Shown here in pieces: positions 1 to 16,822 of a stretch of 18,795 nt of DNA. The stretch comes from Selaginella moellendorffii (Eukaryota; Plantae; Lycopodiophyta). Position numbers and translations under genes: made by a program. The stretch's first letter is position 1. Each line of letters opens with the position of its first letter. Below the pieces are notes generated by a model, which ran no database searches, was not told the origin of the DNA, and saw nothing but the letters and a program-made list of their open reading frames with translations. The stretch spans positions 194,455 through 213,249 of the forward strand of contig NW_003314420.1 of the NCBI RefSeq assembly GCF_000143415.4, written 5' to 3'.

Positions 1-1934
1 ATCTGGTTCTGGCAGTGGGTAGAAGAATTTCGTGGGTGTCCTGTAAAACGAACTCTGAGCTCTTTAGAGCCTTATCAAGGATTTGATCGTGCTGATTGTC
101 GAAGCCTGTGGTGTACCTTGGTGGACTACTACAGCCAACTTGCTCCAACTCTGTCAAGTCTACCTTTGCTTTTGAGAGAATAAGATGTGCCGGGCAATAG
201 ATAATCTCTTGTGAAGGTTTAAGTTCCGTACAAGTACCACAATTTTCTTCAAGGCGCAAGTCAACATCGTCTGGCATGCTATGTTCATTGTTTTGGATCA
301 GTGCATTTATGCTATGTGCTATTCTGCTGGCTGAGTTTCCTGGATAAGATACTTCCATTCCCTCGTTCGTAAAACTGGGAAGACAGGCAGCGTCAACACG
401 ATAGATAAGCTGCTGGGCGAGATCTTTAATCAAAGGAAGGTAGCTCTTTTTATCAGTGTTTTGTCTGAAGCTGCCCGTAGATTGGAAGTCTGTGTTCTCA
501 GTTCTTTTCAGAGATGCATCTTTGTCTTTCTCCAGATTTTGTTCCCCTGTTTTGTCTCTTTTTTTTGCCTCTCTTCTCGATTTTTCTTCATTTACTGATT
601 TCATTGCATATGTATTTGCCAGGCTGTCCTCACAGAAGGTTGTTTTGGGCTTTTTACAATGAAAATAATTTCTTTTTTTCATGGAACTATAATTTAATAG
701 TTGAGGGGAATACGAGACCACATCAGCAGACCTTTTTTGTTGACGAGTTGAACCAGACCGTCTTAAGGGCAAAAAGGATGTTTTAGACAGCTTGTGCTTG
801 ACTCGTTTCCCTTCTGCTTTCTGAAAAAAGAATAAATACTGAAAATGGGTTTTCATGGCTAACCTGACGTTTTGAGCTCGGTAAAAGTCCCAGTGCAGAC
901 AAACTTTTATGAACTTGAACTCCGGTTTTCCAGGACGCTTTTCTAATGACTGGTTCCTTTGGTTTCGACTTCGATCCTGAATCAAACCCCACAAGTTTAT
1001 TGCTTCTAATAAGCTCAACTGTGTTGCTGCCACAGGAGCGTAAGATTGTGACTTGTTCGCTTTTCAAAGTATTTTCCAATTCAAGATCCGGCAGGCCCAT
1101 TTCTTGCAGATTTGTCAGGGAACCAAACCAAGGCCCAACTCCCTCGCGAGAATGACGCGCAAATTCAGAATCCCATGGAGGCTTTTGCAAGTTTGTTTTA
1201 GGTTTAGATTGCGACCTGTAGAAATGATGATGTACTAAAACGACGTGAAAGACTCACTTTACCCCAATTTAGAGCGCCGGATCTGATCAAAGTGCTTCAC
1301 ACGGTCTTTGCAAGATATCTTTTCTGGAATTGTTGCTCGTTTCCTTTTTGTCTTCGAAAGTCCGACCTGTGGTGTTCAAAGTATTAATGAAGGAAAAAAC
1401 TAGCAAGAATCTCACTCCGTCATCATGTGCATGCACTGTAGTACATGATTTCTTTCTTGACTGGTTCTGCACACAATGTGAGGAGCTACTGCTCTTTTTC
1501 AGGGAGTTGACGTCTGGTGTGGCGGTTGCAGAAATCGGGACTAAACCAGCTGTCCGAAGGCAACAGTTAGGAGCTTCAGCTTTTGTCCGCTGGTATTTGT
1601 GCAGAGGAACTTTATGTCTGAGCGATTCTGCCGGCAGAGAATGCTTTTTACCAGTAGGCTCTGTGCATGAATACGGCAAGTAACAGTGCAGGGATCTTCT
1701 TCGATTTCCACCGACAGGTGCTTTTCCCTCCGCTCCTTTCCCAAGCTGTTGAGCTTCAAAGCTTTCCAAAATCTGTTCGTCGTTGATCTTCGTGATCGTT
1801 TGCTGTCCTTTTTCTTTTACAATGCTTGATATTCGATTGTTTTCTAAAAAACTCTGGAACAAGTCTAGATCTGCTGGAGCATGCCTGGCCACAAGAGCTA
1901 TCAGAGGTGGGCTCACGTACTCAGGGAAAGCCAT
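1..1934 (-). CDS. Spliced protein-coding gene, unknown function (K/S-rich, low complexity), 3' end beyond window; exons 1934-1416, 1366-1263, 1215-864, 820-<1
   Basis: Three GT-AG introns (1415-1367 GTGAG..CAG, 49 nt; 1262-1216 GTAAAG..CAG, 47 nt; 863-821 GTTAGC..CAG, 43 nt) join ORF 1287..1934, a 104-nt exon (VGLSKTKRKR...RSKLG), ORF 783..1190 and a stop-free frame from 820 to the window edge (KAEGKRVKH...MKKRNYFHC...LLPTARTR), all with consistent phases. A further in-frame 45-nt intron at 731-687 is possible. CpG is retained, unlike in the TE block. No domain recognised; start codon uncertain. Confidence 0.75.
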
Positions 1935-2334
1935 AATCTTACAACTAGCTGCAATACGACCACAAACCTATTAGTATCACCCTCGTCAGTTTCAGTATAT
2001 TCTCCTGGACAATTTTTTTATGTCGAGAAGAGTGTTTTCCAGGATGATTTCTAGCTTGTTTCTAAGATGGCTCTTATTGCCCTTCCCTGCAGTTCAAGAA
2101 GACTTGGAGTATCACCTCCTATGACATACAAGGTAATCTTGCACAGAAGCCTCATAAAGTCACAAATTGCTAGCATATTCTGTTTGAGAAACTGAGAAAA
2201 GGTAAAACTCAAGTCAGAATGAAAATAATTTAGCATCTTACACACATGAATATCAGCAAATATACGATCAAGCCACAGAACCTGGGATTTTCTGAAGTAC
2301 ATACCTTTACTATAATAGATGTAATCCGGGTTCT
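1935..2334 (-). other. Probable spliced transcript segment upstream of the gene (5' UTR exons or 3' end of a neighbouring gene)
   Basis: Intron-like GTATGT..TTCTCAG (2304-2192, 113 nt) and GTATGT..CTGCAG (2129-2087, 43 nt). Every joined frame I tried hits a stop before 1934. Confidence 0.3.
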
Positions 2335-2789
2335 NNNNNNNNNNNNNNNNNNNNNNNNNNNNNNNNNNNNNNNNNNNNNNNNNNNNNNNNNNNNNNNNNN
2401 NNNNNNNNNNNNNNNNNNNNNNNNNNNNNNNNNNNNNNNNNNNNNNNNNNNNNNNNNNNNNNNNNNNNNNNNNNNNNNNNNNNNNNNNNNNNNNNNNNNN
2501 NNNNNNNNNNNNNNNNNNNNNNNNNNNNNNNNNNNNNNNNNNNNNNNNNNNNNNNNNNNNNNNNNNNNNNNNNNNNNNNNNNNNNNNNNNNNNNNNNNNN
2601 NNNNNNNNNNNNNNNNNNNNNNNNNNNNNNNNNNNNNNNNNNNNNNNNNNNNNNNNNNNNNNNNNNNNNNNNNNNNNNNNNNNNNNNNNNNNNNNNNNNN
2701 NNNNNNNNNNNNNNNNNNNNNNNNNNNNNNNNNNNNNNNNNNNNNNNNNNNNNNNNNNNNNNNNNNNNNNNNNNNNNNNNNNNNNNNNN
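2335..2789. other. Assembly gap (455 N)
   Basis: Run of N; ORFs spanning it are artefacts. Confidence 1.
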
Positions 2790-3737
2790 ATTCATCCATG
2801 TGTCTACAGAATATCCTGAACCTGCTATATGGCCTGTCTAGGTAAGCTCCTCCTACACTAGGGGAGGCCAAGAAAATCCAAGGCTACCCAACTCACTCAC
2901 TGGCTGACAAGACCAAACCAATCAAGCTAGGGACCCAAGGTTATATTGCACTGCACAGGATAAATCCCACATAAGAGGATGATGAAGTGTGCTCAACCGT
3001 GTTTCCACTGGTCGGTTGCAAACTACTTCAAGGCATCAGGTAAGGTGCAATTGGCCCAGTTGCCCCACTGTCACACTCTTGCAGGACATAAATAAAGAAC
3101 ACTCTTTTACTAATCAGATATGCTTAGGGCCATTGTGTTGCCACTAGCAGGCTGTGAGCCACTCTCTTCTACTCAAGAATTCCTTCAAAATCTCTATGTC
3201 AGAGCATCCCACCATTGGCCAGTAACATAGTAGTCCTGGGACAATGATCTTGAATCCAAGAGTGTTCTCATAGGAGTTAGATTTGAGAGTGTCCTCCATG
3301 TATGTTGCTAGTGGTAGGCCATGAGATCTCTCTCTCCATATTCAAAGTCCTCATAATCACTAGTATACACTGTTAAACACTTTCAAATGCAGGACCACTG
3401 GAAAGATGGGGGTGGGGCCCAGCCTAAGATCTTTGTCTTTTATGCTAGATCATAACATGGTGTTAGAATGTTTTAGATGGTTCTTAAGATGAGATTGATG
3501 CCTAAATACCTCTTTCTCCCTTAAAATCCCTCACATCTTGCAGCTGGAATTGCTAGGGTATACCATCCAAAGTTGAATAGCAGCAATAATCCATATGGCA
3601 TTAGGGTAGGATAATTATGCTAAGGGGGGTTTGGGGTATTTTTAAAGAGGATAAAATTGGATTTGGAGATCTAGTTTGGAGGTAGATAAAAGTAAATATA
3701 GCATAGGTGGCAGAGTAGGGTTAGTCTCCATAGACTA

Positions 3738-3913
3738 TGTTATGCCACCTCTTGAGATTCCTTACCACCCAACCACCCCTAAGCTACCTCAAAAACTTTA
3801 TTATGTTGCCGCTCCATTGTGAGCCTTAGGGTAGGTTAAGTTCCCTACCCTAACATGCCTTAATATACCCATGAGCTTAATGTTGACCACATGGTAAAAG
3901 TTGGTGCCTAACA
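3738..3913 (-). repeat. 3' LTR of element A (core; weak homology extends left to ~3699)
   Basis: TGTTATGCC...CTAACA aligns to 7663-7849 at roughly 84% identity, almost all differences transitions. Confidence 0.85.
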
Positions 3914-3925
3914 ATTCTTCCCCCC
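3914..3925 (-). promoter_or_regulatory. Polypurine tract of element A
   Basis: GGGGGGAAGAAT on the minus strand, abutting the 3' LTR. Confidence 0.8.
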
Positions 3926-3929
3926 AATA

Positions 3930-5300
3930 AAGTCTTTGTCCCAAGGATGAGTTGTACTGGTGATCACCTTTTTTGGGGAACTCTGCTCAAGCTTCTAGTC
4001 CATTTACTACAGTCATATATATCAAGGAAGCATTGGGCCCGTCACTTTGAGATAGTACACCTTTCAACTAGCTAACATAAAATACTAGATGAATTTCACC
4101 CTAGTTAGCAATTGCACTGATAAGCCGCCTTACCAATGCACTCCAACACTTCATATGGACCAGCATACCAATGAGAAAGTTTATCACTCTTCCCATTCCA
4201 TAAAGCCACTAAGGTGTTCCATTGCTCACTTGACGGAAAAATCACTTGCACAAAGATGAGATCACCCACCGTATATTCCTTGAATTAGCGATATTCATTA
4301 GTAAACTTTTCCACTCTATCCTAAGCTGCCTACAAATTCTGTTTGCAAACCACTAGAATCTCATTAAGTTCTATGGCTAAATCAGTTCTCTTGGAATTAA
4401 GCTTATCTTGAACATCCTTACTCAAATGCAATCCCAAATCCACTGCTATTCGGGGATGCCTTCCAAACATGGCAAAGTAAGGACTTAATTTGGTTCTATT
4501 ATATTAGCTATTATTATAAGTAAATTGCACCAATGGAAGATATAAATCCCAATGTCCTTGCCTTTGACTAATGTTATAGTGTAGCATATCCTCCACCACT
4601 TGATTCATATGCTCAATTTGCCTATCCATCTAAGGATGATCTCCACTCGAAAGTTTCAAAGTCACTTGCATAGTCTTTGCAAAGCTCTTCCAAAATCCAC
4701 TAGTGAACTTTGAATCTCAATCATTAATGATGTCTTTCAACAAACCAAAATCAGGAAAAATCTTCTCTAAATGGACTGTAGCCAAGTTTGAGGCAGTGAC
4801 AGTCTTCTAAAGAACCAACAATCGTACATATTTCGTCAATCGATCCACTATAACCCATATTTGCTCCTTTTACCTTTGTGTTCATGGCAAACAAGTGATG
4901 AAGTCCATAGAGATACTACACCAATGGCTCTAAGGAATAGGTAAAAGCTGCAAAAGTCCCCTTGGCTTCTCCTATGGCACTTAAACCACTAACAGAGTTC
5001 ACATGATTTACAATACTTGAGGATATTAGCCTTTATATTCTTTCAATAAAAATTGTACTTAATCAACTTATACATCTTCTTCCCCCCAAAATAACCAGCC
5101 TCTGGACAATCATGATAATGGAATAAACTTGAGTAATTAACACATCCACCTGTGGCAAATATACATGGCCATTGTAGTAAAGAATCCCATCCATCAATAG
5201 AAAGGTGCTTCCATCTAGCCTCGCAAAGAGACAACCTCAGAGCATCTTTAGCCTAAGCACACTTAACCAATTGCCCAAACTCATTGGCCACCTTACTTAA
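3930..5300 (-). pseudogene. Gypsy integrase pseudogene (Zn-finger, core, GPY/F); chromodomain apparently mostly deleted
   Basis: HDCPEAGYFG...KYCKSCELC; SISMDFITCLP; VIVDRLTKY; D*DSKFTSGFW; HP*MDRQIEHMNQVVEDML; WYAGPYEVLECIGKAAY; only an AEFP remnant before the PPT. Confidence 0.88.
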
Positions 5301-5344
5301 ATGATAACAAAACTGTGTTTGTAATGCCATCACATAACAAAATG

Positions 5345-5960
5345 AGATAAAGTATTTGCCACCACATTTGATTTCCCAGATGATGCTCAATAGGAAACTC
5401 CTAAAACTCCATGAGTTTGACCATCTAATGAACTTGCCTAGTGTTCAACTCCTTTTGTGTGAAAAGATACACAAGAGGTTTATGATCCATCAACACTACA
5501 AACACTACACTATAAAGATAGTGCTGCCATGTCTACAAAACATGAATAATAAAGAGTAACTAATAAAGAGTAAAAATATCATCCAAAAAAATCTCTACAA
5601 ACTCATGAAGATAATGCCTAAATACCTTTGTCATCAATCAAGTAAATATGGCTGGTCAAAGTAAATAGCATAATTGTAAACTCAAAATGCTCGAAGCTCA
5701 TGCTGAATGTTGTCTTGGAGATCGATGCATCATCCATTATAATCTGATGATATCCACTATTCAGATCAATTTTGGTAAACACCCATGCTTCACCAAGCTT
5801 GTCTAAGATATCATCCACACACAGTATCGGCATTTTATCCTTCATTGTCTTCTTGTTCAAGGCACAATAGTCAATACACATCTACATTGAACCATCCTTC
5901 TTCTTCACAAGCAAGACTGGAGCACCAAATGGAGATTTACTTTGCTGAATAAATCCAAAC
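5345..5960 (-). pseudogene. Gypsy RT N-terminal part fused by deletion to RNase H C-terminal part
   Basis: [28 protein letters not shown]; KIDLNSGYHQI; FLDDI at ~5590-5576; then directly LLFIIHVL*TWQHYL, DHKPL and NVVANTLS of RNase H. Confidence 0.88.
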
Positions 5961-6289
5961 TCAAGTAACTCCTTGATTTGTCGTTGAACTTCTTACTCCT
6001 TTGTATAACTCAACTAAAATGAACACTAGAAAATTGGCTGCGTCCCCAGCTTCAACATAATCCCATGCTCCACATCTTATAATGGAGGCAACCCATGAAA
6101 AAGTTCAAATGGAAAAATATCAGAAAACTCATCAAGTTTATCCCGTACTACTGCTTCTCCCCCACACGTGCCTTGGTCCCTCAAGTCACAAACAAACAGC
6201 AAGTAACTTGAAAATGCTTTTCTATTATAGCCCACTTCAAAGATATGGTAGAGAGCATAACAACTGGAGGTTGAACTCCCTCTCCAAAC

Positions 6290-7591
6290 CACACATCTTT
6301 AATGCTATTGTACTCTAGCAAGACATGCTTAATACTCCACTTTATCTTTGGATCCACCTTCACCAACCATAGCATCCCAAAAATGAGATCCTGGATATCT
6401 ATTCTTCACAAGTATGGTTTTGCCAACCAAGACTTCCAACCCCTTGACACAAGCATTGAAATGTTAAGTAGAGGTAGCTACACCTTCCATTGTATATAGA
6501 AAAACTCCTTGTGTTACTAGACCATGCTCCTCAACAAACTTTGCTGAAAAAAAGTTGTCATTGCTCCCACTATCCAGTAAAATTTGCATTAAACCGCCAC
6601 AAATTATGCCCTCCAGCATTAAAGCTAATTCACAAGTGTCCTCGAGCTCCATCTTTTTCCACACACAGTTGAGTTGATGAGCAATGATCGAAAGCCTCTT
6701 CCTCCAACCAGAATGGTCATCCCTGTCATCCTCACATTGCAAAGTTTGCAACTTTTTAGTGTCTGACTTACCATCAGTAGAAGATTGGCCATTCTTTTTG
6801 CTCTACTGCTTATTTTTCAATTGTGAACAATTAGTTTTATAGTGTCCAAGTTCGCCCCAATAATGACAACCCTGTTTATAATTCTTCATAAAGAACTTCT
6901 ACTTCTTTGACCCCTTTGCATCCGAAGTAATCACTATAGACTTCAATTTGTGATGCTTGTTTCCATTCTTGTGTCCACGACAATCATTATGATGATTCTT
7001 GATAGAAGGACTCCTTGAACGCTTGTGAGACTTGTCATTGTCAAGTCGACGAGCCATATTAAAGAGCTCCTCCAAACTCTTTATAGGCTAAGAATGATGC
7101 AAGTATTGCTACATGCTCTCACTATGAAAGCCATCAATGAAATAAAATTTGTTCTAATCTAGATCCTTCATTAGAACATGGCTAATCAAACAAGTAAGCT
7201 TCTCAATATAGTCCTCAAGTGTCATTTTCCCTTGCTGAAAATGTTGAAGTTTTGTGCAAGCATTCTCCACGTCGTAATGAAGGGTAAAACATAAATGAAA
7301 AGTAGCCTCAAACTCATCCATGGTAGACATTGGTGGTTTTCTTATCTACAATATGAGACTCCTCAAGCCAATTCCACTATTGAAAACCCGCATCACATAA
7401 AACCATTGGAATAGCCACTAAAGCCTCTGCATCTTGAGTACCTTTAGCAGTTAAAAACTTCTTCACATTGGCTAGCCAAATGAGACACTCGTCCACACCA
7501 CCATCACTAAAAAAAGCTGGAATCTTGAGTCAATCTATTTAGTGGCACCATCATTGATAATAGGATTCTAGGGTTCAACTTGGTTGGCCAT
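6290..7591 (-). pseudogene. Gypsy gag (zinc-knuckle remnant) and aspartic protease pseudogene
   Basis: KIPAFF...WLANVKKF; QQGKMTLEDYIEKL; CHYWGELGHYKTNC at 6868-6827; protease LLDSGSNDNF at 6580-6551; LIFGMLWLVKVDPKIKW. Confidence 0.85.
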
Positions 7592-7603
7592 CACAACCAA
7601 CTC

Positions 7604-7614
7604 CTTTGATACCA
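7604..7614 (-). promoter_or_regulatory. Primer binding site (tRNA-iMet type) of element A
   Basis: TGGTATCAAAG on the minus strand (plant consensus TGGTATCAGAG), just inside the 5' LTR. Confidence 0.8.
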
Positions 7615-7615
7615 A

Positions 7616-7849
7616 TATTATGATCTAGCACAAAAAGACAAAGATCTAGTCTCTCAAAATTACGTTACGCCACTTCTTGAGGTTCCTCACCACCCAACCA
7701 CCCCCCGAGCTACCTCAAAAGCTCCACCGCACTGCCACCCCACTGTGAGCCCTAGGGTAGGTTAAGTTCCCTACCCTAACATGCTTTAATATACCCTTGA
7801 GCTTCCCTTTGACAAACATTGACTACATGGTCAAAGTTGGCGGCTAACA
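7616..7849 (-). repeat. 5' LTR of element A (~234 bp)
   Basis: Homologous to 3699/3738-3913; inner boundary set by the PBS; plus-strand right end CTAACA. Confidence 0.85.
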
Positions 7850-7938
7850 CACAGCCTCTAGCAAGATTAACATTGTGCAAGATAAACATCACCTCATATA
7901 AGATATAACAGTCTACGAAAACTAAACCACTTACTTGC

Positions 7939-8304
7939 TTGATTAATTGTGTTAGAATAAAGGATCTAGATCAAAACAACTCCTACTTCATTAATAGCTT
8001 CCACAATGACAGCATGAGGCAACACATATATCATTCCCAACTTACAAAGAGTTTAGAGGAGATCTTTGATGTGGCTTATCGACTTAACAGTGATAATCAT
8101 AAGTCTTGCAAGCATTTGAGGAGTCCTTCAGTTGAGAATCATCATGATGATTGCTATGGACACAAGGATATGAACAAACATCACAAGTTAAAGTTTGTGA
8201 TGTCTATTTTGGATGTGAAAAAGTACAAGTTCTTTGTGAAGAATAATAGGCAAGATTTTCACCATTGTGGTGAACTTAAAAACTACAAGGTTGATTGTCG
8301 ATAG
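7939..8304 (+). pseudogene. gag fragment of element B
   Basis: KDLDQNNSYFINSFHNDSMRQHI...SLEEIFDVAYRL...HHCGELKNYKVDC parallels the gag and zinc knuckle of A. Confidence 0.8.
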
Positions 8305-8435
8305 TTGAAGAACAAGTAGTAGAGGAAGAAGAATAACCAATCTTCTAGTGACAGCAAGTCAGATACTAAAATGTTACAAAATTTCCAGTGTGAAGATGAT
8401 GATGAAGACCATTCTAGTTAGAGGAAGGGGCTTTT

Positions 8436-9575
8436 TGTTGCGAATGTGACTTTGGGTATTGAAAGTTACTTGTTGCCCAGTCCTTACAGACACTCTTTCC
8501 TTACTGCCACAATGGTAGAAGGTCGGTATTGCTAGACCCTTTATCAGCCCCTCTTGTTCAAGTGTTAGTAAACTGGACTTTGCATCTGTACTTGGCCGAA
8601 TGAGCATAAGGATGGAATTCCTAAGTGTCTATTAGCCAAGCATACTTGGCCTAGCTTTTTACTTCTTTTTTGCTCTGTCTTGCACTAGCTTGACAAGAAC
8701 CTTCGCATATTGAGACTAGTCCCTCAATATCGCTAGATGATAGCTTACCGTGTCTGCCAAACACCCTCGCTATCATGCCCTTTGTGTTAGTCTCATTTCG
8801 GTCCCAAATGCTATTTATGAAAAGTGTCTAGATTTGCTCATTTGGCATATCTACAGAGTGTAGAGATTAGCCTGAACACAATGGTGTTCGTCCCGTATCC
8901 AAATTCACATTCTAGCGCTATTCCATATTTAGTAAGTTTCGAGCTTGTCCCAAAGACTAACTCCTGGTACTAAGGGAGGCTTGGGGTGAAAGCCCAAAGT
9001 GTGTATTCCTCAAAGGGGGTGGGGTTGTGGGGGGTTCCAAATGTATAGTAGGGATAGTGGGTAAGTCAGGCATGGTTGACCAACCTAAGGCATAGTCTAG
9101 CTCCTGCTTGCGTGCCTGTCCTTGTTTTGCGTCTGACTTGGGTTTAAGCCCAAGTTCCATTCCATGCTAGCTGGTGGAGTACCCATTTCCTCATGTTAGG
9201 CCATCAGTATGCCGAAATAGGGCCAGACTTTGTTTGGCTCCGTTTTGCATGCTGGTCCTGGCATTGGGATGCTGGTTGCTCTAGGACTATTCCAAGTTGC
9301 TCCGGGCTCCTGTCCCTTTGCTCCTTGGGCTGTATGCTCGGGAATTGCTCTGTGGTCTAGTTCCATCACTCCTTGGCTCCATGCTTGGGGGTTTGGCACT
9401 GTTCCTTTGTTCAGTGGCCCAAGGCCCTGAACCTCGGGTTCCACACCAATGTTCTATGGACATGTGGCATGTGACATATGGCATATGACTCGTGGCACAT
9501 GGAGGGTTTAGGTACCGCTTCGTGGTTTTATCCTATGGTAAATCAGGATAAAGGGCCAAAACCACGTATGCTACA
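8436..9575 (+). repeat. 5' LTR of C1 (1140 bp)
   Basis: TGTTGCGAATG...GCTACA followed by TT + PBS; homologous to 12441-13516. Confidence 0.85.
9459..9500 (+). repeat. Three degenerate 14-bp tandem units in the C1 LTR
   Basis: GACATGTGGCATGT / GACATATGGCATAT / GACTCGTGGCACAT; C2 has a single unit at the equivalent site. Confidence 0.75.
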
Positions 9576-9577
9576 TT

Positions 9578-9588
9578 TGGTATCAAAG
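9578..9588 (+). promoter_or_regulatory. PBS (tRNA-iMet type) of C1
   Basis: TGGTATCAAAG 2 nt after the LTR-terminal CA; the C2 equivalent is TAGTATTAGAG at 13519-13529. Confidence 0.8.
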
Positions 9589-11543
9589 GATGAGTTTTAG
9601 TGAGTACTATTCAATGAGATTGGGCAACTAGTCTTGTTGCATATGCAGAGATGAAAATGATGATCTGAGTGGGTATACATTTGGGTGCAAAGGCTTCGCA
9701 ATGGTTCCTTGGGTATGGATTTTGGATACCTTTCGTTCTAGGTTATATGAGCTTTTGCTTGGGCTCATAAGTTTGAGATAAGATGTTTCGGTTGCACGAG
9801 TTTTCGCTTGGGCTCGTGAGTGAGGCACATTAGCATTTCAAGGTTACACTTTGAGTTGGCAGGATTAATGTTAGCCTATCGGTGGTTCCATAAGTTGTTC
9901 CTTGTACCATGGGAGAAAGTAAACCTTCCCTAGGTTTGCTATAAGTGGCAAATAGGCTAGTCCATAGCTGTTTAGCACGACACTAGTGGATCCTTCCTAG
10001 GCATGATTACAAGTGGATCAATCAAGACTATAGGGATTAGTCTATTGGTTCAAGTAGTAATTGCCGTGCTCTCTTATAAACTTTTCTTGGATTGGACTGA
10101 AGGCAGTGTGAATGCAAGCTTGAGGTTTAGTCAAAAGATGAGACCGAAAAGAGAGTCATCAGGACGAAGGATCAAACATATAAATCATTTTCTCTTCATG
10201 GAGAGATGATTTGCAATGAGATGTGACTCATTGCTCATATTCGCATTATGCAATCAAGAGTCCCTACCTTGATGCATGTTGGAAATGATGGTCTTACAAA
10301 TGGCACGTCATGGAATGGATAGCGATGAAGCATTAAACCATTTTGTCTAGGTTTGCTATTGGAAGACTTGGGTTACAATGCTCAATTCTTTTTCAAGGAA
10401 CCTTGCTATTGCTCCTTGAGTAGCTTGGTGTTGGATTAGTTCTGAGTTTGGTCAGATAAAGGGCGGCATGAGCTTGTCCATGTTATGAACAAAAGTTAGT
10501 GGTCTTGGGTGTTGTAAGTCTCTATCGGTAGAGTGTGGCATTTATGTTGCATTTTATCAAAACAAGTTAGCACTTGATATTCACATAAACCTTTGAAGTA
10601 ATGACATTGGCATTGCTCGTGGTGTTACTCAATTGTTGGTCAAGACATTGTGATTCTTATATCATATCTATGTGATAATGAGCAATGTGTTTAAGAAGTT
10701 GCTTGGTTAAATGATGATCAACCCCAAGGTGGTTGATGGAGAAGCTAGTCTACTTACAGGTAGTACCATTGTAGTAGCTTTGACTGGATTCTTGATGGTG
10801 ATCCATTGTGCTAAGATTAAGTTGGTTCCTTGTTCTTGCCCATAAGGTGTTGGAAACGTAAGATTCATTTGCTATAGCTCATCAGTTGATCTGTTAGCAC
10901 TTGGAGTAGATTGTTGGATAGAGAAGGTGTGTAGTTGGGGCATTGATATGTGTTAGTGGAAGTGGCAATGTTATTTTGAGTGATGAGGAATTTTCTTTAG
11001 ACCTTGATTTTTCATGTTATTTTTCTTGTTAGTGTTTTGACTTCATATTGAATCTTGAAAGTGATTGGAGAAGAGTGTTAGTGCGATGTGGATATCCAAA
11101 GATATAGTCTTCATGATCAAGCCTTGGGTGTTCACTTTGCATTTTTGCGGATATCGATGTTGGATGTCGGAAAAATGGGCAAAAATGTTTGATACTTAAG
11201 CATGCTATGGTCTTGAGACCACATGCACTACACTTTCGCTTGTTGCTCATCAACTCAACTATGTGTGGAACAAAATAAAGGCCAAGGACATTTGTGCATC
11301 AGCTTTAATGTTGGAGGGTAGGTTTTATGGTGGTCAATTTGAAGTTTGCTAAATAGTAGGAGTGATGACAATTTTATTTTGGGAAAGTTTATTGAAGAGC
11401 ACAACTTAGTGACATAAGAAGTTCTTACATATATAATATAAAGTGTAACTACCCTTGCCTAGCATTTTGATGCTTATGTAAAAGAGCTATAAGTGTATGT
11501 TGAAAAAACCACACTTGTGAAGACTTTTTATCTAGTGGATATC

Positions 11544-11724
11544 TATAAACAATTAAAGAGAATGATTCGAGAGACAAATATAAAGGGAAAAAGGCTCATG
11601 AATAAGAGTGCACTTTCTTTTCCAATTGGTTAAGGGTTTTAGGATATTCAGGGTTAAATGTCCTTGGATTTCAATAGTATTGTGTTAGGTGTTTTTTCAG
11701 AAAGTCTAAATTTAAGAGTTTACA
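11544..11724 (+). repeat. 5' LTR of TRIM (181 bp)
   Basis: TATAA...TTACA; about 75% identical to the 3' LTR over the 149-nt alignable part, mostly transitions. Confidence 0.85.
11652..11707 (+). promoter_or_regulatory. Decayed 5S rRNA-derived internal Pol III promoter segment in TRIM 5' LTR
   Basis: GGTTAAATGTCCTTGGATTTCAATAGTATTGTGTTAGGTGTTTTTTCAGAAAGTCT aligns without gaps to the 3' LTR copy and to 5S nt 50-105; box C is badly eroded. Confidence 0.6.
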
Positions 11725-11925
11725 TTTCGTATCAAAGGGGTCTTGGATCCGACTCTATTAGTTAACTTAAAGGAATAATACCACATGTTGAGAATGATAT
11801 CTAGCAAGTTTAGTTTACCTTTGGTTGAGCTCAACTTAAGGATAAAGAGAGTGGAACTCTCAAAAGAACTATAGATCTTAACTTATGTTCACAAGGGCAT
11901 GAACTTATAAAGAAATATGGTGGAT

Positions 11926-12120
11926 TATAAGAAATCAAAGAGAATGAGTTAAGAAACAATTGATATAGGTTCAAATATAAAGAGAAAAAGGCCATGAATA
12001 AAAATATATCCCCTTTTTCAATCGGTTAAAGGTCTTGGGATATTTGGGGTTAAGTGTCCTTTAATTTGAATAATATTGGGCTGAGTGACCTCCTAAGAAG
12101 TTCAAATTCAAGAGCTTACA
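11926..12120 (+). repeat. 3' LTR of TRIM (195 bp)
   Basis: TATAA...CTTACA, preceded by the PPT-like tract and followed by the TSD. Confidence 0.85.
12048..12103 (+). promoter_or_regulatory. 5S rRNA-derived box A / IE / box C segment in TRIM 3' LTR
   Basis: GGTTAAGTGTCCTTTAATTTGAATAATATTGGGCTGAGTGACCTCCTAAGAAGTTC vs recalled angiosperm 5S nt 50-105 AGTTAAGCGTGCTTGGGCGAGAGTAGTACTAGGATGGGTGACCTCCTGGGAAGTCC: 38/56 ungapped, 11 of the 18 mismatches are C>T or G>A. Confidence 0.8.
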
Positions 12121-12440
12121 ATATTGTGGATCTCATTTTTGGGATGCCTTGAGTAAGGTCGTTAGTGAGTTTAAGCAATTGGTTGAGTGTGCTTAAGCTC
12201 AGGATGATGAAAAGAGTCTCTTTGTGAGCCAAAATAGATGCACGTTTCTCATTGGTGGATAAGATTCTTTACTAAAATGGGTGTGTGTATTTACTACAAG
12301 TGGATGTGTTGATTAATTATGTTTTATTCCACTAGCATGATCTTCTAGAGGCTGTTCATTTTGGGGGGAAGAAGACATATGAGCTGATTAAGTGAAATTT
12401 TTATTGGAGAAATATAAAGGCTAATATCCTCAAGTATTGC

Positions 12441-13516
12441 TGTCGTGAATGTGACTTTGGGTATCGAAAGTTACATGTCAGGTAGTCCTTACGGACACTC
12501 TTTCCTTACTGCTACAATGGCAGGAGGTCGGTATTGTTGGTTCCCTTTATTAGCCCCTCTTATTCAAGTGTTAGTAAACTAGGCTTAGCACCTGTACTTA
12601 GCCAAATGGACATAAGGTAGGAACTCTTATATGTTTCTAGTTAAGCATACTTGGTTTGGCTCTTAGTTCTCTTTTGCTCTTAGTCCCTCAATATCGCTAG
12701 ATGATAGCTTACCGTGTCTGCCAAACACCCTCGCTATCATGCCCTTTGTGTTAGTCTCATTTCGGTCCCAAATGCTATTTATGGAAAGTGTCTAGATTTG
12801 CTCATTTGGCATATCTACAGAGTGTAGAGATTAGCCTGAACACAATGGTGTTCGTCCCGTATTCAAATTCGCATTCTAGCGCTATTCCATATTTAGTAAG
12901 TTTCGAGCTTGTCCCAGAGACTAACTCCTGGTACTAAGGGAGGCTTGGGGTGAAAGCCCAAAGTGTGTGTTCCTCAAAGGGGGCGGGGTTGTGGGGGGTT
13001 CCAAATGTATAGTAGGGATAGTGGGTAGGTCAAACATGTCTGATCAACCTGAGGCATAGTCTAGCTCCCGCTTGAGTGCCTGTCTTTGTTCTGCGTCTGG
13101 CTTGTGTCTAAACCCAAGTTCTATTCCATGCTAGCTAGTGGAGTACCCATATCCTTGCGTTAGGCCATCGGTATGCCGAAATAGCACTAAACTCTGTTTG
13201 GCTCTGTTTTGCATGCTGGTCCTAGCACTGGGATGTTAGTTGCTCTAGGACTATTCCAAGTCGCTCTGGGCTCCTGTCCCTTCGCTCTTTGGGCTGTATG
13301 CTCGAGAGTTGCTCCGTGGTTCGGTTCCATCACTCCTTGGCTTCATGCTTGGGAGTGTGGCACCATTCCTTCGTTCAGTGGCCCAAGGCCATGAAACTTG
13401 GGTTCCACACCACTGTCCTTTGGACACGTGGCACAAAGAGGGTTTAGGTTCTGCTTCGTGGTGTTATCCTATGGTAAATCACTATAGGATAAAGGGTAAA
13501 AACCACATGTGTTACA
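12441..13516 (+). repeat. 5' LTR of C2 (1076 bp)
   Basis: TGTCGTGAATG...GTTACA; lacks ~40 bp at 12680 and two 14-bp units relative to the C1 LTR. Confidence 0.85.
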
Positions 13517-13824
13517 TTTAGTATTAGAGGATGAGTCTCGGCGAGTACTATCCAATGAGATTGGGCAACTAGTCTCGTTGCATACGCAAAGATGAAAACG
13601 ATGATCTGAGTGGGTACACGTTTGGGTGCAAAGGCTTCGCATTCGTTTCTTGGGTATGGATTTTTGTTACCTTTTTGTACTGCATTGTATGAGCTTGCTC
13701 TTGGGCTTATAAGATGGATGTGAGATGTTCTATTTGCATGAGTTTATGCTTGGGCTCGTTAGTGAGGCACATTAGCAACTCGAGGTTACACTTTGAGTTG
13801 GCAGGATTAATGTTAGCCTATTGA

Positions 13825-13863
13825 TGGTTCTATGAGTTGTTCTAGTGGTTCTGTGAGTTGTTC
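13825..13863 (+). repeat. 21-bp-period tandem duplication specific to C2
   Basis: TGGTTCTATGAGTTGTTC-TAG-TGGTTCTGTGAGTTGTTC; C1 has one copy (~9883-9900). Confidence 0.7.
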
Positions 13864-16373
13864 CATGTACCATGGGTGAAAGTAAATCTTCCCTAGGTTT
13901 GCTATGAGTGGCAAATAGGCTGGTCTGTAGCTGTTTAGCATGGCACTAGTGGATCTTTCCTAGGCATGATTACAAGTGGATCAATCAAGACTATAGGGAT
14001 TAGTCTATTGGTTCAAGTAGTAATTGCCGTGCTCTCTTATAAACTTTTCTTGGATTGGACTGAAGGCAGTGTGAATGCAAGCTTGAGGTTTAGTCAAAAG
14101 ATGAGACCGAAAAGAGAGTCATCAGGGATGAAGGATCAAACACGTAAATCATTTTCTCTTCTTGGAGGGATGATTTGCAATGAGGTGTTAACTCTTTACT
14201 CGTGTTCATATTATGCAATCAAGAGTACCTATCTTGATGGATATTGGAAATGATGGTCTTACAAATGGTAGGTTATGGGATGGATAGCGGTGAAGCACTA
14301 AACCATTTTGTCTAAGCTTGCTATTGGAAGACTTGGGTTACAGTGCTCAATTCTTTTCTAGGGAACCTTGTTATTGCTCCTTTAGTAGCTTAGTGTTGGA
14401 TTAGTTTTGAGTTTGGTCAGAAAGAGAGTGGCATGAGCTTGTCCATGTTATGAACAAAAGTTAGTGGTGTTGGGGTTGTAAGTCTCTATCGGTAGAGTGT
14501 GGCATTTATATTGCATTTTGTCAAATTGAGTTAGCACTTGATAGTCACATAAACCTTTGTAGTAGTGACATGGGCATTACTCGTGGTGTTGCTCAATTGA
14601 TGATCAAGTCATTGTGATTTCTATTTTATATCCATGTGATAGTGAGCAATGTGTTTACGAAGTTGCTTGGTTAAATGATGATCAACCCGAAAGTGGTTGA
14701 TGGTGAAGCTAGTCTACTTGCAAGTAATAGCATTGTAGTAGCTTTGACTAAATTTTTAATGATGATCCATTATGCTAAGCTTATATTGGTACCTTGTTTC
14801 CTTGAGGGTTTGCCCATTAGGGTGTTGGAAAAAGGTTGTAGCATTCATTTGCTATAGCTCGTCGGATGATCTGTTAGCAGTAAATTGTTGGATGGAGAAA
14901 ATGTGTAGTTGAGGCATTGACATCACTAGCATTTGTGTTAGTTGAAGTGGCATTGTTATTTCAAGTGATAAGGAATTTTCCTTGGACCTTGATTTTCCAC
15001 GCCATTTTTCTTGTTAGTGTTTATGCTTTACATTGGATCTTGAAGGTGATTGAAGAAGAGTGTTAGTGCAATGTGAATATCCGAAGATGTGGTCTTCGTG
15101 ATCAAACCTTGGATGTTCATTTTGCACTTTGTAGATGTCCATGTTGGATATCGGTGAGATGGGCAAAGATGTTTGATGCTTAAGCATATTGATGGATCAT
15201 GAGAATTTGTGTTGAGGTGAACCTATGTGAAGTTGTTAGTAAGAGGAAGTTGGTTGAGTCTTGAAAGTTTGCATTCCTAGACTGAGAGTCATTCTTTCTC
15301 TAGGATGGAAAATTTTCCACAAATTTTCTTAAGATTTTCCAATGGCCGATTTGTTGGTCACTTTGCCGAAAACTATTTCGTTTTCTTAAGCTAGTACAAA
15401 CTAGTGAAAGGGTTGGAGTTGACTTTGGTTGGCTTAGACCTTAGTAAATAGTTTGTATGATGTAGCCCAAAAGGGATACTGACTTTTGGGGCTAAGGCAG
15501 TTAAGTTGGATAGAGTCTGGAGTTGGTGTAGAAAAGTGGCTGATGCGCTTTTCTAAGAAAGGTGACCCTTGTGCCTTTCTTTTATAGTGTTGTGCTTCGT
15601 GGTAGGTTGCACTTTGCATTTCGTTTAGACTCTATGAGAGTAGTGGGCTCTCACTGATCCTAATTTGGTCTTGGTGGTCTTGTGCCTTGGCTAAAGATGG
15701 TGATGACCAACTTAGTTGTTTGAGGTTGAAATGTTAGTACCTATACTATAGCTTTGTCTATGAGGAGGTTGTGTACCGATATGAGTCCATCTTATGATCT
15801 TCACTTTAGTTTCAACTGAGTGTTGATCATGCATAGCTAGCCTCTTTAAGGCATGCTCATAGGTATTGGCTAAATGCATTAATGAGCTTATTTTGGTTGA
15901 GTTGGATTCGAGTGGTCATTTAGTTCGTACTTGTCCATGAACCTATATCTCATACATGAGGTATTATGTTACTATTGGACAAGTATATAACTTGATGGCA
16001 TGAGTTTAGTGTTTAAGTCTTGTGAAGGCAAGTTGAAAGAGTGATTGTTGGTTGTTTGACAACTAATGATTCCTTGTAGACTTTGTCAAAGACTGTTTGA
16101 CACTTGCTTCGCTTGATGATGATTTAGTAGTGATGGGCTTGCTTTATCGGATGGTGTTGTAGAGGATCATGTCGTTAGACTTACATGGATTTTCCATGTT
16201 GGCATATCGATTCTACCTCTGTCGATATCATTTAGTGATGTTTAGTCTATGGTGTTGGATTTCATTAAATCTTGGATATGGTGATTCATTCCTTGATGAT
16301 GTGTTATCTGAAACTGAGTTTTGTTGAAGGATTAGTCTCAGATATGACTAAAGATCTTCAACTTTGTTGCTAT

Positions 16374-16822
16374 NNNNNNNNNNNNNNNNNNNNNNNNNNN
16401 NNNNNNNNNNNNNNNNNNNNNNNNNNNNNNNNNNNNNNNNNNNNNNNNNNNNNNNNNNNNNNNNNNNNNNNNNNNNNNNNNNNNNNNNNNNNNNNNNNNN
16501 NNNNNNNNNNNNNNNNNNNNNNNNNNNNNNNNNNNNNNNNNNNNNNNNNNNNNNNNNNNNNNNNNNNNNNNNNNNNNNNNNNNNNNNNNNNNNNNNNNNN
16601 NNNNNNNNNNNNNNNNNNNNNNNNNNNNNNNNNNNNNNNNNNNNNNNNNNNNNNNNNNNNNNNNNNNNNNNNNNNNNNNNNNNNNNNNNNNNNNNNNNNN
16701 NNNNNNNNNNNNNNNNNNNNNNNNNNNNNNNNNNNNNNNNNNNNNNNNNNNNNNNNNNNNNNNNNNNNNNNNNNNNNNNNNNNNNNNNNNNNNNNNNNNN
16801 NNNNNNNNNNNNNNNNNNNNNN
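16374..16822. other. Assembly gap (449 N)
   Basis: Run of N. Confidence 1.

Follow-up and report, generated by a model that had tools for sequence, protein, structure and literature searches.

A Cassandra-like mini-retrotransposon with 5S-type control regions in its LTRs in the spikemoss Selaginella moellendorffii

To our knowledge, Cassandra is the only validated LTR retroelement in which the RNA polymerase II promoter has been swapped for a polymerase III promoter. Maiwald et al. (2024, PMC10853983) define it by the 5S-related stretch in its LTRs, which always comprises the A-box, the IE and the C-box, has a core of about 70 bp and is accompanied by a Met PBS and a PPT. Cassandra RNA has an 18-nt terminal redundancy (Kojima's summary), and an age of 250 million years has been quoted for the group. 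Its range is given as monocots, dicots and ferns, to the exclusion of gymnosperms (PMC10853983, PMC7215508). With these elements (Kalendar et al. 2008; PMC7215508; PMC10853983) the spikemoss element described here shares the lack of genes, a length below 1 kb, box A, IE and box C in each LTR with an 18-nt spacing, and a tRNA-Met PBS, whereas its host is a lycophyte.

Related solutions have been described elsewhere. The nemertean TRIM Ajax, with a size of 421–434 bp that is similar to that of our element and a reported 5-bp TSD, likewise has no more of 5S in its LTR than the promoter part, with box A, IE and box C (PMC10886601); its hosts are animals and its origin is surely independent, and the two are likened here by description only. 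SINE3 elements, i.e. 5S-derived SINEs, are likewise non-autonomous retroelements driven by the internal promoter of 5S, but they have neither LTRs nor a PBS, are moved by LINEs and produce variable TSDs. From S. moellendorffii itself comes Helenus-1_SMo, a TRIM with a small-RNA-derived polymerase III promoter in its LTR and a 5-bp TSD (PMC10886601), in which, however, the module is tRNA-like rather than 5S-like, the LTRs measure 120 bp and the internal part 85 bp. Membership in Helenus was considered for our element and rejected, as its LTRs hold no tRNA-derived module: ARAGORN found no tRNA-like sequence in the window, and Rfam no tRNA on either LTR. The first TRIMs of this genome, SmoRetroS1-8, are of the same element class as the copy described here and were reported as eight subfamilies with 10,158 copies that account for 1.19% of the assembly (Gao et al. 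2016, PMC4717578). In that survey of 48 genomes no Selaginella TRIM was named Cassandra, and all TRIM families other than Cassandra were stated to lack 5S sequence (PMC4717578). Set beside them by description only, the 5S-bearing family that we report may be one of SmoRetroS1-8 with an overlooked 5S module.

The window, i.e. the whole stretch of S. moellendorffii DNA analysed here (18,795 nt), contains at 11544–12120 a non-coding LTR mini-retrotransposon (TRIM) of 577 bp, which, at a probability of about 0.88, we regard as an old, inactive copy of a non-autonomous element with 5S-derived box A, IE and box C in its LTRs, i.e. as Cassandra-type (table 1). Its two direct repeats, paired by their best global alignment, match in 136 of 180 columns (75.6%) and differ by 38 transitions, 6 transversions and one 15-nt indel; their local alignment score of 79 compares with 10.9 ± 1.6 (maximum 22) in 1000 shuffles, so the repeats of 181 and 195 bp noticed in a sequence-only reading of this DNA are borne out. 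The great age claimed there is matched by a Kimura (K2P) distance of 0.32 between the LTRs, and the claim of a gene-less element invisible to an ORF track by the finding that, among the ORFs of the window, the longest one touching the element has only 54 aa. A repeat finder places the starts of the two LTRs 382–396 bp apart. Neither self-comparison of the window nor a scan with the 5S pattern revealed a second family copy or a solo LTR in it, and the GL377724.1 locus that overlaps the window contains no further copy either.

Table 1. Positions in the window of the parts of the element, its putative control regions and its insertion site.
Feature	Position	Strand	Remarks
5′ LTR	11544..11724	+	181 bp, TA...CA; more decayed LTR; left boundary from empty paralog
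3′ LTR	11926..12120	+	195 bp, TA...CA; 15-nt insertion 11957–11971 relative to 5′ LTR; right boundary from paralog and contigs
Internal domain	11725..11925	+	201 bp, non-coding
PBS TCGTATCAAAGG	11727..11738	+	after TT spacer; 9/12 relative to Cassandra tRNA-Met PBS
Purine-rich tract, weak PPT candidate	11909..11925	+	13/17 purines, no clean run; directly before 3′ LTR
TATAAA kept in both LTRs	11579..11584 (5′ LTR), 11976–11981 (3′ LTR)	+	72–73 nt upstream of box A
Putative 5S internal-control-region module, 3′ LTR	12048..12090	+	box A GGTTAAGTGTCC, 18-nt spacer, box C GGGCTGAGTGACC
Putative decayed 5S internal-control-region module, 5′ LTR	11652..11694	+	box A GGTTAAATGTCC, 18-nt spacer, box C reduced to GTGTTAGGTGTTT
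Rfam 5S_rRNA (RF00001) match	12030..12117	+	19.5 bits, E 0.051
Empty insertion site in paralogous gypsy copy	6385..6398	-	TRIM flanks meet around single ATATC
Left copy of putative 5-bp TSD, ATATC	11539..11543	.	alternatively end of 16-nt left copy (11528–11543) of 14-bp duplication
Right copy of putative 5-bp TSD, ATATT	12121..12125	.	alternatively start of 14-nt right copy (12121–12134)

The termini of both LTRs read TA...CA. An LTR start at TGGAT (11536/11919), which would provide canonical TG...CA ends and a better PPT, was rejected, since there is then no duplication in the flanks and the homology of the host sequence reaches up to 11543. Two nucleotides past the 5′ LTR begins TCGTATCAAAGG, a decayed variant of the published Cassandra PBS TGGTATCAGAGC that agrees with it in 9 of 12 positions and ends in ...CAAAGG. 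Because so loose a match is frequent by chance—11 matches of this grade occur on both strands of the window, which equals the chance expectation, at about 3 per 10,000 positions—the evidence for this PBS lies in its placement, which is roughly a 2-in-1000 event at a tolerance of 6 nt on one strand. The Met-type PBS of the sequence-only reading is upheld in this form, and the contigs of the family read TTTGGTAT at this place. Of the PPT that had been claimed to end in GGTGGAT, the end is indeed found at the 3′ border of the internal domain, while the tract as such is weak (table 1).

A conserved TATAAA lies in each LTR about 23 nt upstream of the point where the Rfam alignment would place +1 of a 5S gene. 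As Arabidopsis 5S genes require a TATA-like motif at −28 (PMC5887818), the TATAAA of the LTRs could by analogy be likened to this element of 5S genes. Just upstream of box A, each LTR also contains a second box-A-like string (11623–11650, GGTTAAGGGT..., and 12019–12046, GGTTAAAGGT...), as if a short part of the box A region had been duplicated internally.

The published Cassandra search pattern (Kalendar et al. 2020) consists of box A (RGTTAAGYRHGY), a spacer of 15–25 nt (typically 18), box C (RRRATRGGTRACY) and then the PBS (PMC7215508). When the spacer was fixed at 18 nt, the only match in the window was the one in the 3′ LTR, with 3 mismatches in 25 positions; none of 200 dinucleotide shuffles matched, and a scan of all 35,530 positions on both strands reached 3 mismatches just once. 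At the homologous site of the 5′ LTR the 18-nt spacing is intact and 6 of the 25 positions are mismatched, box C having turned into a run of T through C-to-T changes. Six or fewer mismatches are found at just 4 of the 35,530 positions, and two of these four are the two LTRs. The spikemoss box A reads GTCC, where the Cassandra pattern wants RHGY, i.e. an ending in G-Y. A box-A-like string in the gypsy fragment that hosts the element (about 12183–12200; 5268 on the minus strand) was discarded, as its 7 mismatches to the full pattern are at chance level.

A covariance comparison points in the same direction. For the 3′ LTR alone, 5S_rRNA ranks first among 4,227 Rfam families, with a score that stays below the gathering score of 38; the alignment leaves out 40 positions in the 5′ half of the model, is confident from box A to just beyond box C, and retains a closing stem that resembles helix I. 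At the gathering threshold Rfam yields no match anywhere in the window, and 5S_rRNA was found neither in a 901-nt search with E up to 10 nor on the 5′ LTR alone. The match to the 5S control region that had been claimed for both repeats is clear in the 3′ LTR, while in the 5′ LTR it is carried by the pattern and its spacing, with nothing from RF00001 to accompany it. Folding of the LTR RNAs gives z values of −1.4 and −0.1 relative to shuffles, i.e. no gain beyond the sequence. Judged by its sequence, each LTR contains some 60 nt of 5S internal control region, well kept in the 3′ LTR and eroded in the 5′ LTR. Both LTRs have a run of T (T5/T4) that precedes box A by about 30 nt and occupies roughly +17 to +21 of the 5S frame, a position of the same order as the 18-nt terminal redundancy of Cassandra RNA. 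Beyond box C, the 3′ LTR lacks any stretch of at least four T, which is a difference from Cassandra.

The window copy belongs to a larger family. Contigs were taken from three public runs, all from one organism that may or may not be S. moellendorffii, and were aligned to 11000–12700 at a likeness of at least 80%; no RNA run is among those that contain this stretch. Summed contig depth, which just like contig number does not equal genomic copy number, is 70–240 over the internal domain and the unique flank and 11,000–72,000 over the LTR cores (11570–11683 and 11969–12082; run X1), i.e. about 100 times higher in the latter, with individual LTR-core positions covered by more than 100 contigs. 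The LTR core is highly repeated. At its right end, 27–34 contigs per run lose their likeness precisely after 12120, where their consensus continues with TTTGGTAT, i.e. with the start of the Met PBS behind the TT spacer, and contigs with LTR-to-LTR joins and differing internal lengths are seen as well. At 11668 and 12064, where the window copy has A, the majority letter of the family is G, which restores the GGG after box A of the 5S consensus. The boundary that these contigs support is the end at 12120, whereas the 5′ end of the LTR rests on the empty paralog, so that within the reach of these contigs the family withstands the refuting conditions named in the sequence-only reading, with a boundary shared among copies at the 3′ end. 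A scan of metagenomes with a 27-nt degenerate pattern derived from that reading gave no match.

Size, two LTRs, Met PBS and 5S module are all present, and the Cassandra-like TRIM of the sequence-only reading is supported. Since Maiwald et al. define Cassandra by its hallmark, the spikemoss element qualifies as one: it combines a 5S stretch in the LTR with an 18-nt spacing of the boxes in both LTRs and a Met PBS, and it is a gene-less element of less than 1 kb with two LTRs, a likeness that is judged on the 5S core, the pattern and the PBS only. A definition by hallmark is not one by descent, and a spikemoss TRIM might instead have captured a 5S promoter on its own, for example when a 5S-derived SINE landed in its LTR, and would then be convergent with Cassandra. 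Just this SINE-into-LTR route has been proposed for Ajax in nemerteans, and, as in Ajax, the 5S likeness of our element is limited to the internal control region (PMC10886601). The spikemoss LTRs (181–195 bp) are also shorter than those of Cassandras that are themselves described as small, i.e. the Asteraceae elements with their LTR median of 270 bp; multiple origins are openly discussed for Cassandra, and its distribution is patchy, with gymnosperms said to be without it (PMC10853983). On the other hand, box A and box C stand exactly 18 nt apart, as in the Cassandra pattern, yet the 5S gene itself has that spacing (PMC7215508). The Met PBS, the putative 5-bp type of insertion and the length of 577 bp, which is within the 565–860 bp quoted for Cassandra (Kojima's summary), all fit Cassandra, and Maiwald et al. 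prefer a single origin of the lineage (PMC10853983). We consider a separate origin unlikely, though well worth keeping in mind.

How the Cassandra-type element entered its present site can be read from a paralogous sequence. Sensitive self-comparison of the window shows that its flanks recur on the minus strand (11450–11535 resembles 6476–6391, and 12121–12147 resembles 6398–6372), and because both flanks are contiguous in this paralog (6476–6372), i.e. in an empty site, the inserted block is exactly 11544–12120. The paralog represents the protease region of a decayed Ty3/gypsy element, with a weak match to RVP_2 and with gag, RT and integrase pieces nearby, and some contigs of the public runs also correspond to the host repeat without the TRIM block. 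The pentamers at the two junctions, ATATC and ATATT, agree in 4 of 5 letters and the empty paralog holds a single ATATC, which is the usual picture for an LTR integrase. When the left flank is aligned end-anchored to the paralog, however, four scoring schemes all rate highest an alignment that reaches 6385, which corresponds to a 14-bp target (ATATCCAGGATCTC in the paralog) on both sides, and the 5-bp solution comes second, 4–12 score units below. The 5-bp TSD that had been proposed agrees with the junction pentamers and the single ATATC of the paralog, but is outscored by this longer duplication.

A 14-bp duplication would not fit integrase. A Cassandra-type cDNA could also have been inserted without this enzyme, for example if a staggered break captured it or if it recombined through the few letters that the target has in common with the end of the internal domain, with a duplication of 14–16 bp as the result. 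Such an entry would be in line with the alignment through 6385 and with the presence of GTGGAT in both flanks where the paralog has CAGGAT, as the internal domain ends in GGTGGAT. Yet the ATATC/ATATT pair is found exactly at the junctions and has the usual 5 bp, a quasi-repeat in the target (GATATC...GATCTC) makes the alignment ambiguous, and TRIM-less contigs have 7 or 17 other letters at the insertion spot, which points to frequent indels there. Given this short quasi-repeat and the contig variants, an 11-nt indel next to a normal 5-bp TSD is still plausible, and entry without integrase seems rather improbable to us.

Two further explanations would do away with the retrotransposon altogether. 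Tandem 5S units span a few hundred bp (PMC5887818), and with repeats that start 382–396 bp apart the locus could be what is left of a 5S rDNA tandem array, or else two 5S pseudogenes, with units about 390 bp apart. This is very unlikely and was rejected: there is no full 120-nt 5S sequence and no Rfam match at the gathering threshold, 40 model positions are missing and only about half of a 5S gene is recognizable, behind the first repeat lies a Met PBS, the block has the defined boundaries of a discrete insertion in a gypsy protease region that also exists as an empty paralogous site, and family copies stop at the end of the repeat to continue with TTTGGTAT. Accidental 5S likeness and accidental repeats in AT-rich repeat DNA, for which a G+C content of 32% in this region and an Rfam score below gathering might be adduced, are practically ruled out by the shuffle controls for both the 5S pattern and the LTR alignment, along with the all-position scan and the family contigs.

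By analogy to Cassandra, the life cycle of a Cassandra-type element in the spikemoss may be pictured as follows. TFIIIA, TFIIIC and TFIIIB would assemble on the internal control region of the 5′ LTR and RNA polymerase III would produce the RNA of the element, for which an autonomous LTR retrotransposon would supply the packaging proteins; initiator tRNA-Met at the PBS would then prime reverse transcription, and the cDNA would be integrated. In this polymerase III model, the polymerase would have to pass the T run that precedes box A in the 5′ LTR. The present copy landed in the protease region of a decayed gypsy element and, after insertion, decayed mainly by C-to-T and G-to-A transitions, with the 6:1 bias for transitions probably being a trace of the methyl-cytosine decay of old plant repeats. 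As box C of its 5′ LTR is destroyed, the copy can no longer act. At angiosperm substitution rates of about 0.7–1.3 × 10^-8 per site per year, K = 0.32 would roughly translate into an insertion age of 10–25 million years, a figure in which methylation inflates the transitions and in which the angiosperm rates perhaps do not hold for spikemosses.

The neighbourhood of the element is itself a mosaic of decayed repeats. The gypsy element with the empty site (3722–7849, minus strand) has LTR remnants at 3722–3913 and 7647–7849 that are 78% alike, a PBS (TGGTATCAAAGG) at 7603–7614, and stretches of gag (6902–7529), protease (6467–6802), RT (5621–5881) and integrase (pieces at 4108–5252). A gag ORF of the window found no homologue in a protein search, and an RT ORF found one unrelated 836-bp contig, with only gypsy RTs of other plants and of algae in a representative search. 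The recipient of the TRIM is another copy of this gypsy family, a fragmentary one that lies head to head with the first on the plus strand (7909–8434, 11233–11535 and 12121–12439). It lacks about 1.06 kb of the RT region between 12147 and 12134, and the ends that meet there overlap by 14 nt, which suggests a deletion between short direct repeats. Two non-coding direct repeats of 2.8 kb (8436–11232 and 12441–15204), each beginning with TG, share 84.5% of their letters and recur very often in the public runs. The first of them is a clean insertion at the gag–protease junction with a 5-bp TSD (CTTTT/CTTTC), and its last 14 nt resemble the LTR end; it contains an internal 'CTACA TT TGGTATCAAAGG' (9573–9589), which is decayed in the second repeat (13519–13530). 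Each of the two looks like a piece of a large non-autonomous LTR element that comprises an LTR of about 1.14 kb, a PBS and 1.6 kb of non-coding interior, and a 3′ LTR after the second repeat was not found in the window.

All three PBSs in the window (7603–7614 on the minus strand, 9578–9589 and 11727–11738 on the plus strand) end in ...ATCAAAGG, where the canonical ending is ...ATCAGAGC. This may reflect parallel G-to-A decay or a primer variant specific to spikemosses, and with such a common ending the TRIM and its neighbours could share their primer tRNA. Farther away lies the gene SELMODRAFT_431560 (about 1070–2400, minus strand; on GL377724.1 of GCA_000143415.2), which encodes 370 aa with no Pfam domain and no homologue found; a 215-aa ORF of the window (1290–1934, minus strand) is 100% identical to this hypothetical protein over 81% of its length, although an exact look-up of the ORF gave no entry. 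With the sequence of the window present in the GL377724.1 locus that was retrieved through this protein, the host is established as a lycophyte. Assembly gaps are located at 2335–2789, interrupting this gene, and at 16374–16822.

Within its family the present copy is an ordinary fossil, of use chiefly as a nested insertion that can be dated and for which a paralog preserves the empty site. The lycophyte/euphyllophyte split took place roughly 400 million years ago. We lean towards the view that TRIMs with a 5S promoter form an abundant lycophyte family beyond the fern and angiosperm range, in which case either their lineage predates this split or plants have captured a 5S promoter into TRIMs more than once. 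Because the searchable literature reports ferns and angiosperms only, the spikemoss family appears to extend the range of Cassandra, a possibility raised in the sequence-only reading for the case of a lycophyte host, which S. moellendorffii is. Searchable full text, a scope outside which lie most subscription journals and Repbase, contains no report of Cassandra in Selaginella or in lycophytes, so that Cassandra from this lineage is probably, though not certainly, previously unreported.

If our interpretation is true, the statement that Selaginella TRIMs hold no 5S sequence needs correcting under either origin, and the TRIM annotation of the Selaginella reference genome would be amended. The lycophyte family would also provide a far outgroup for testing whether the 5S promoter was captured once or repeatedly. 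In Asteraceae, the promoter of Cassandra tracks the host's own 5S gene (PMC10853983), and with this outgroup it could be asked whether the promoter of the element tracks the 5S gene of its host here as well. Such an outgroup would also bear on the true age of the Cassandra lineage.
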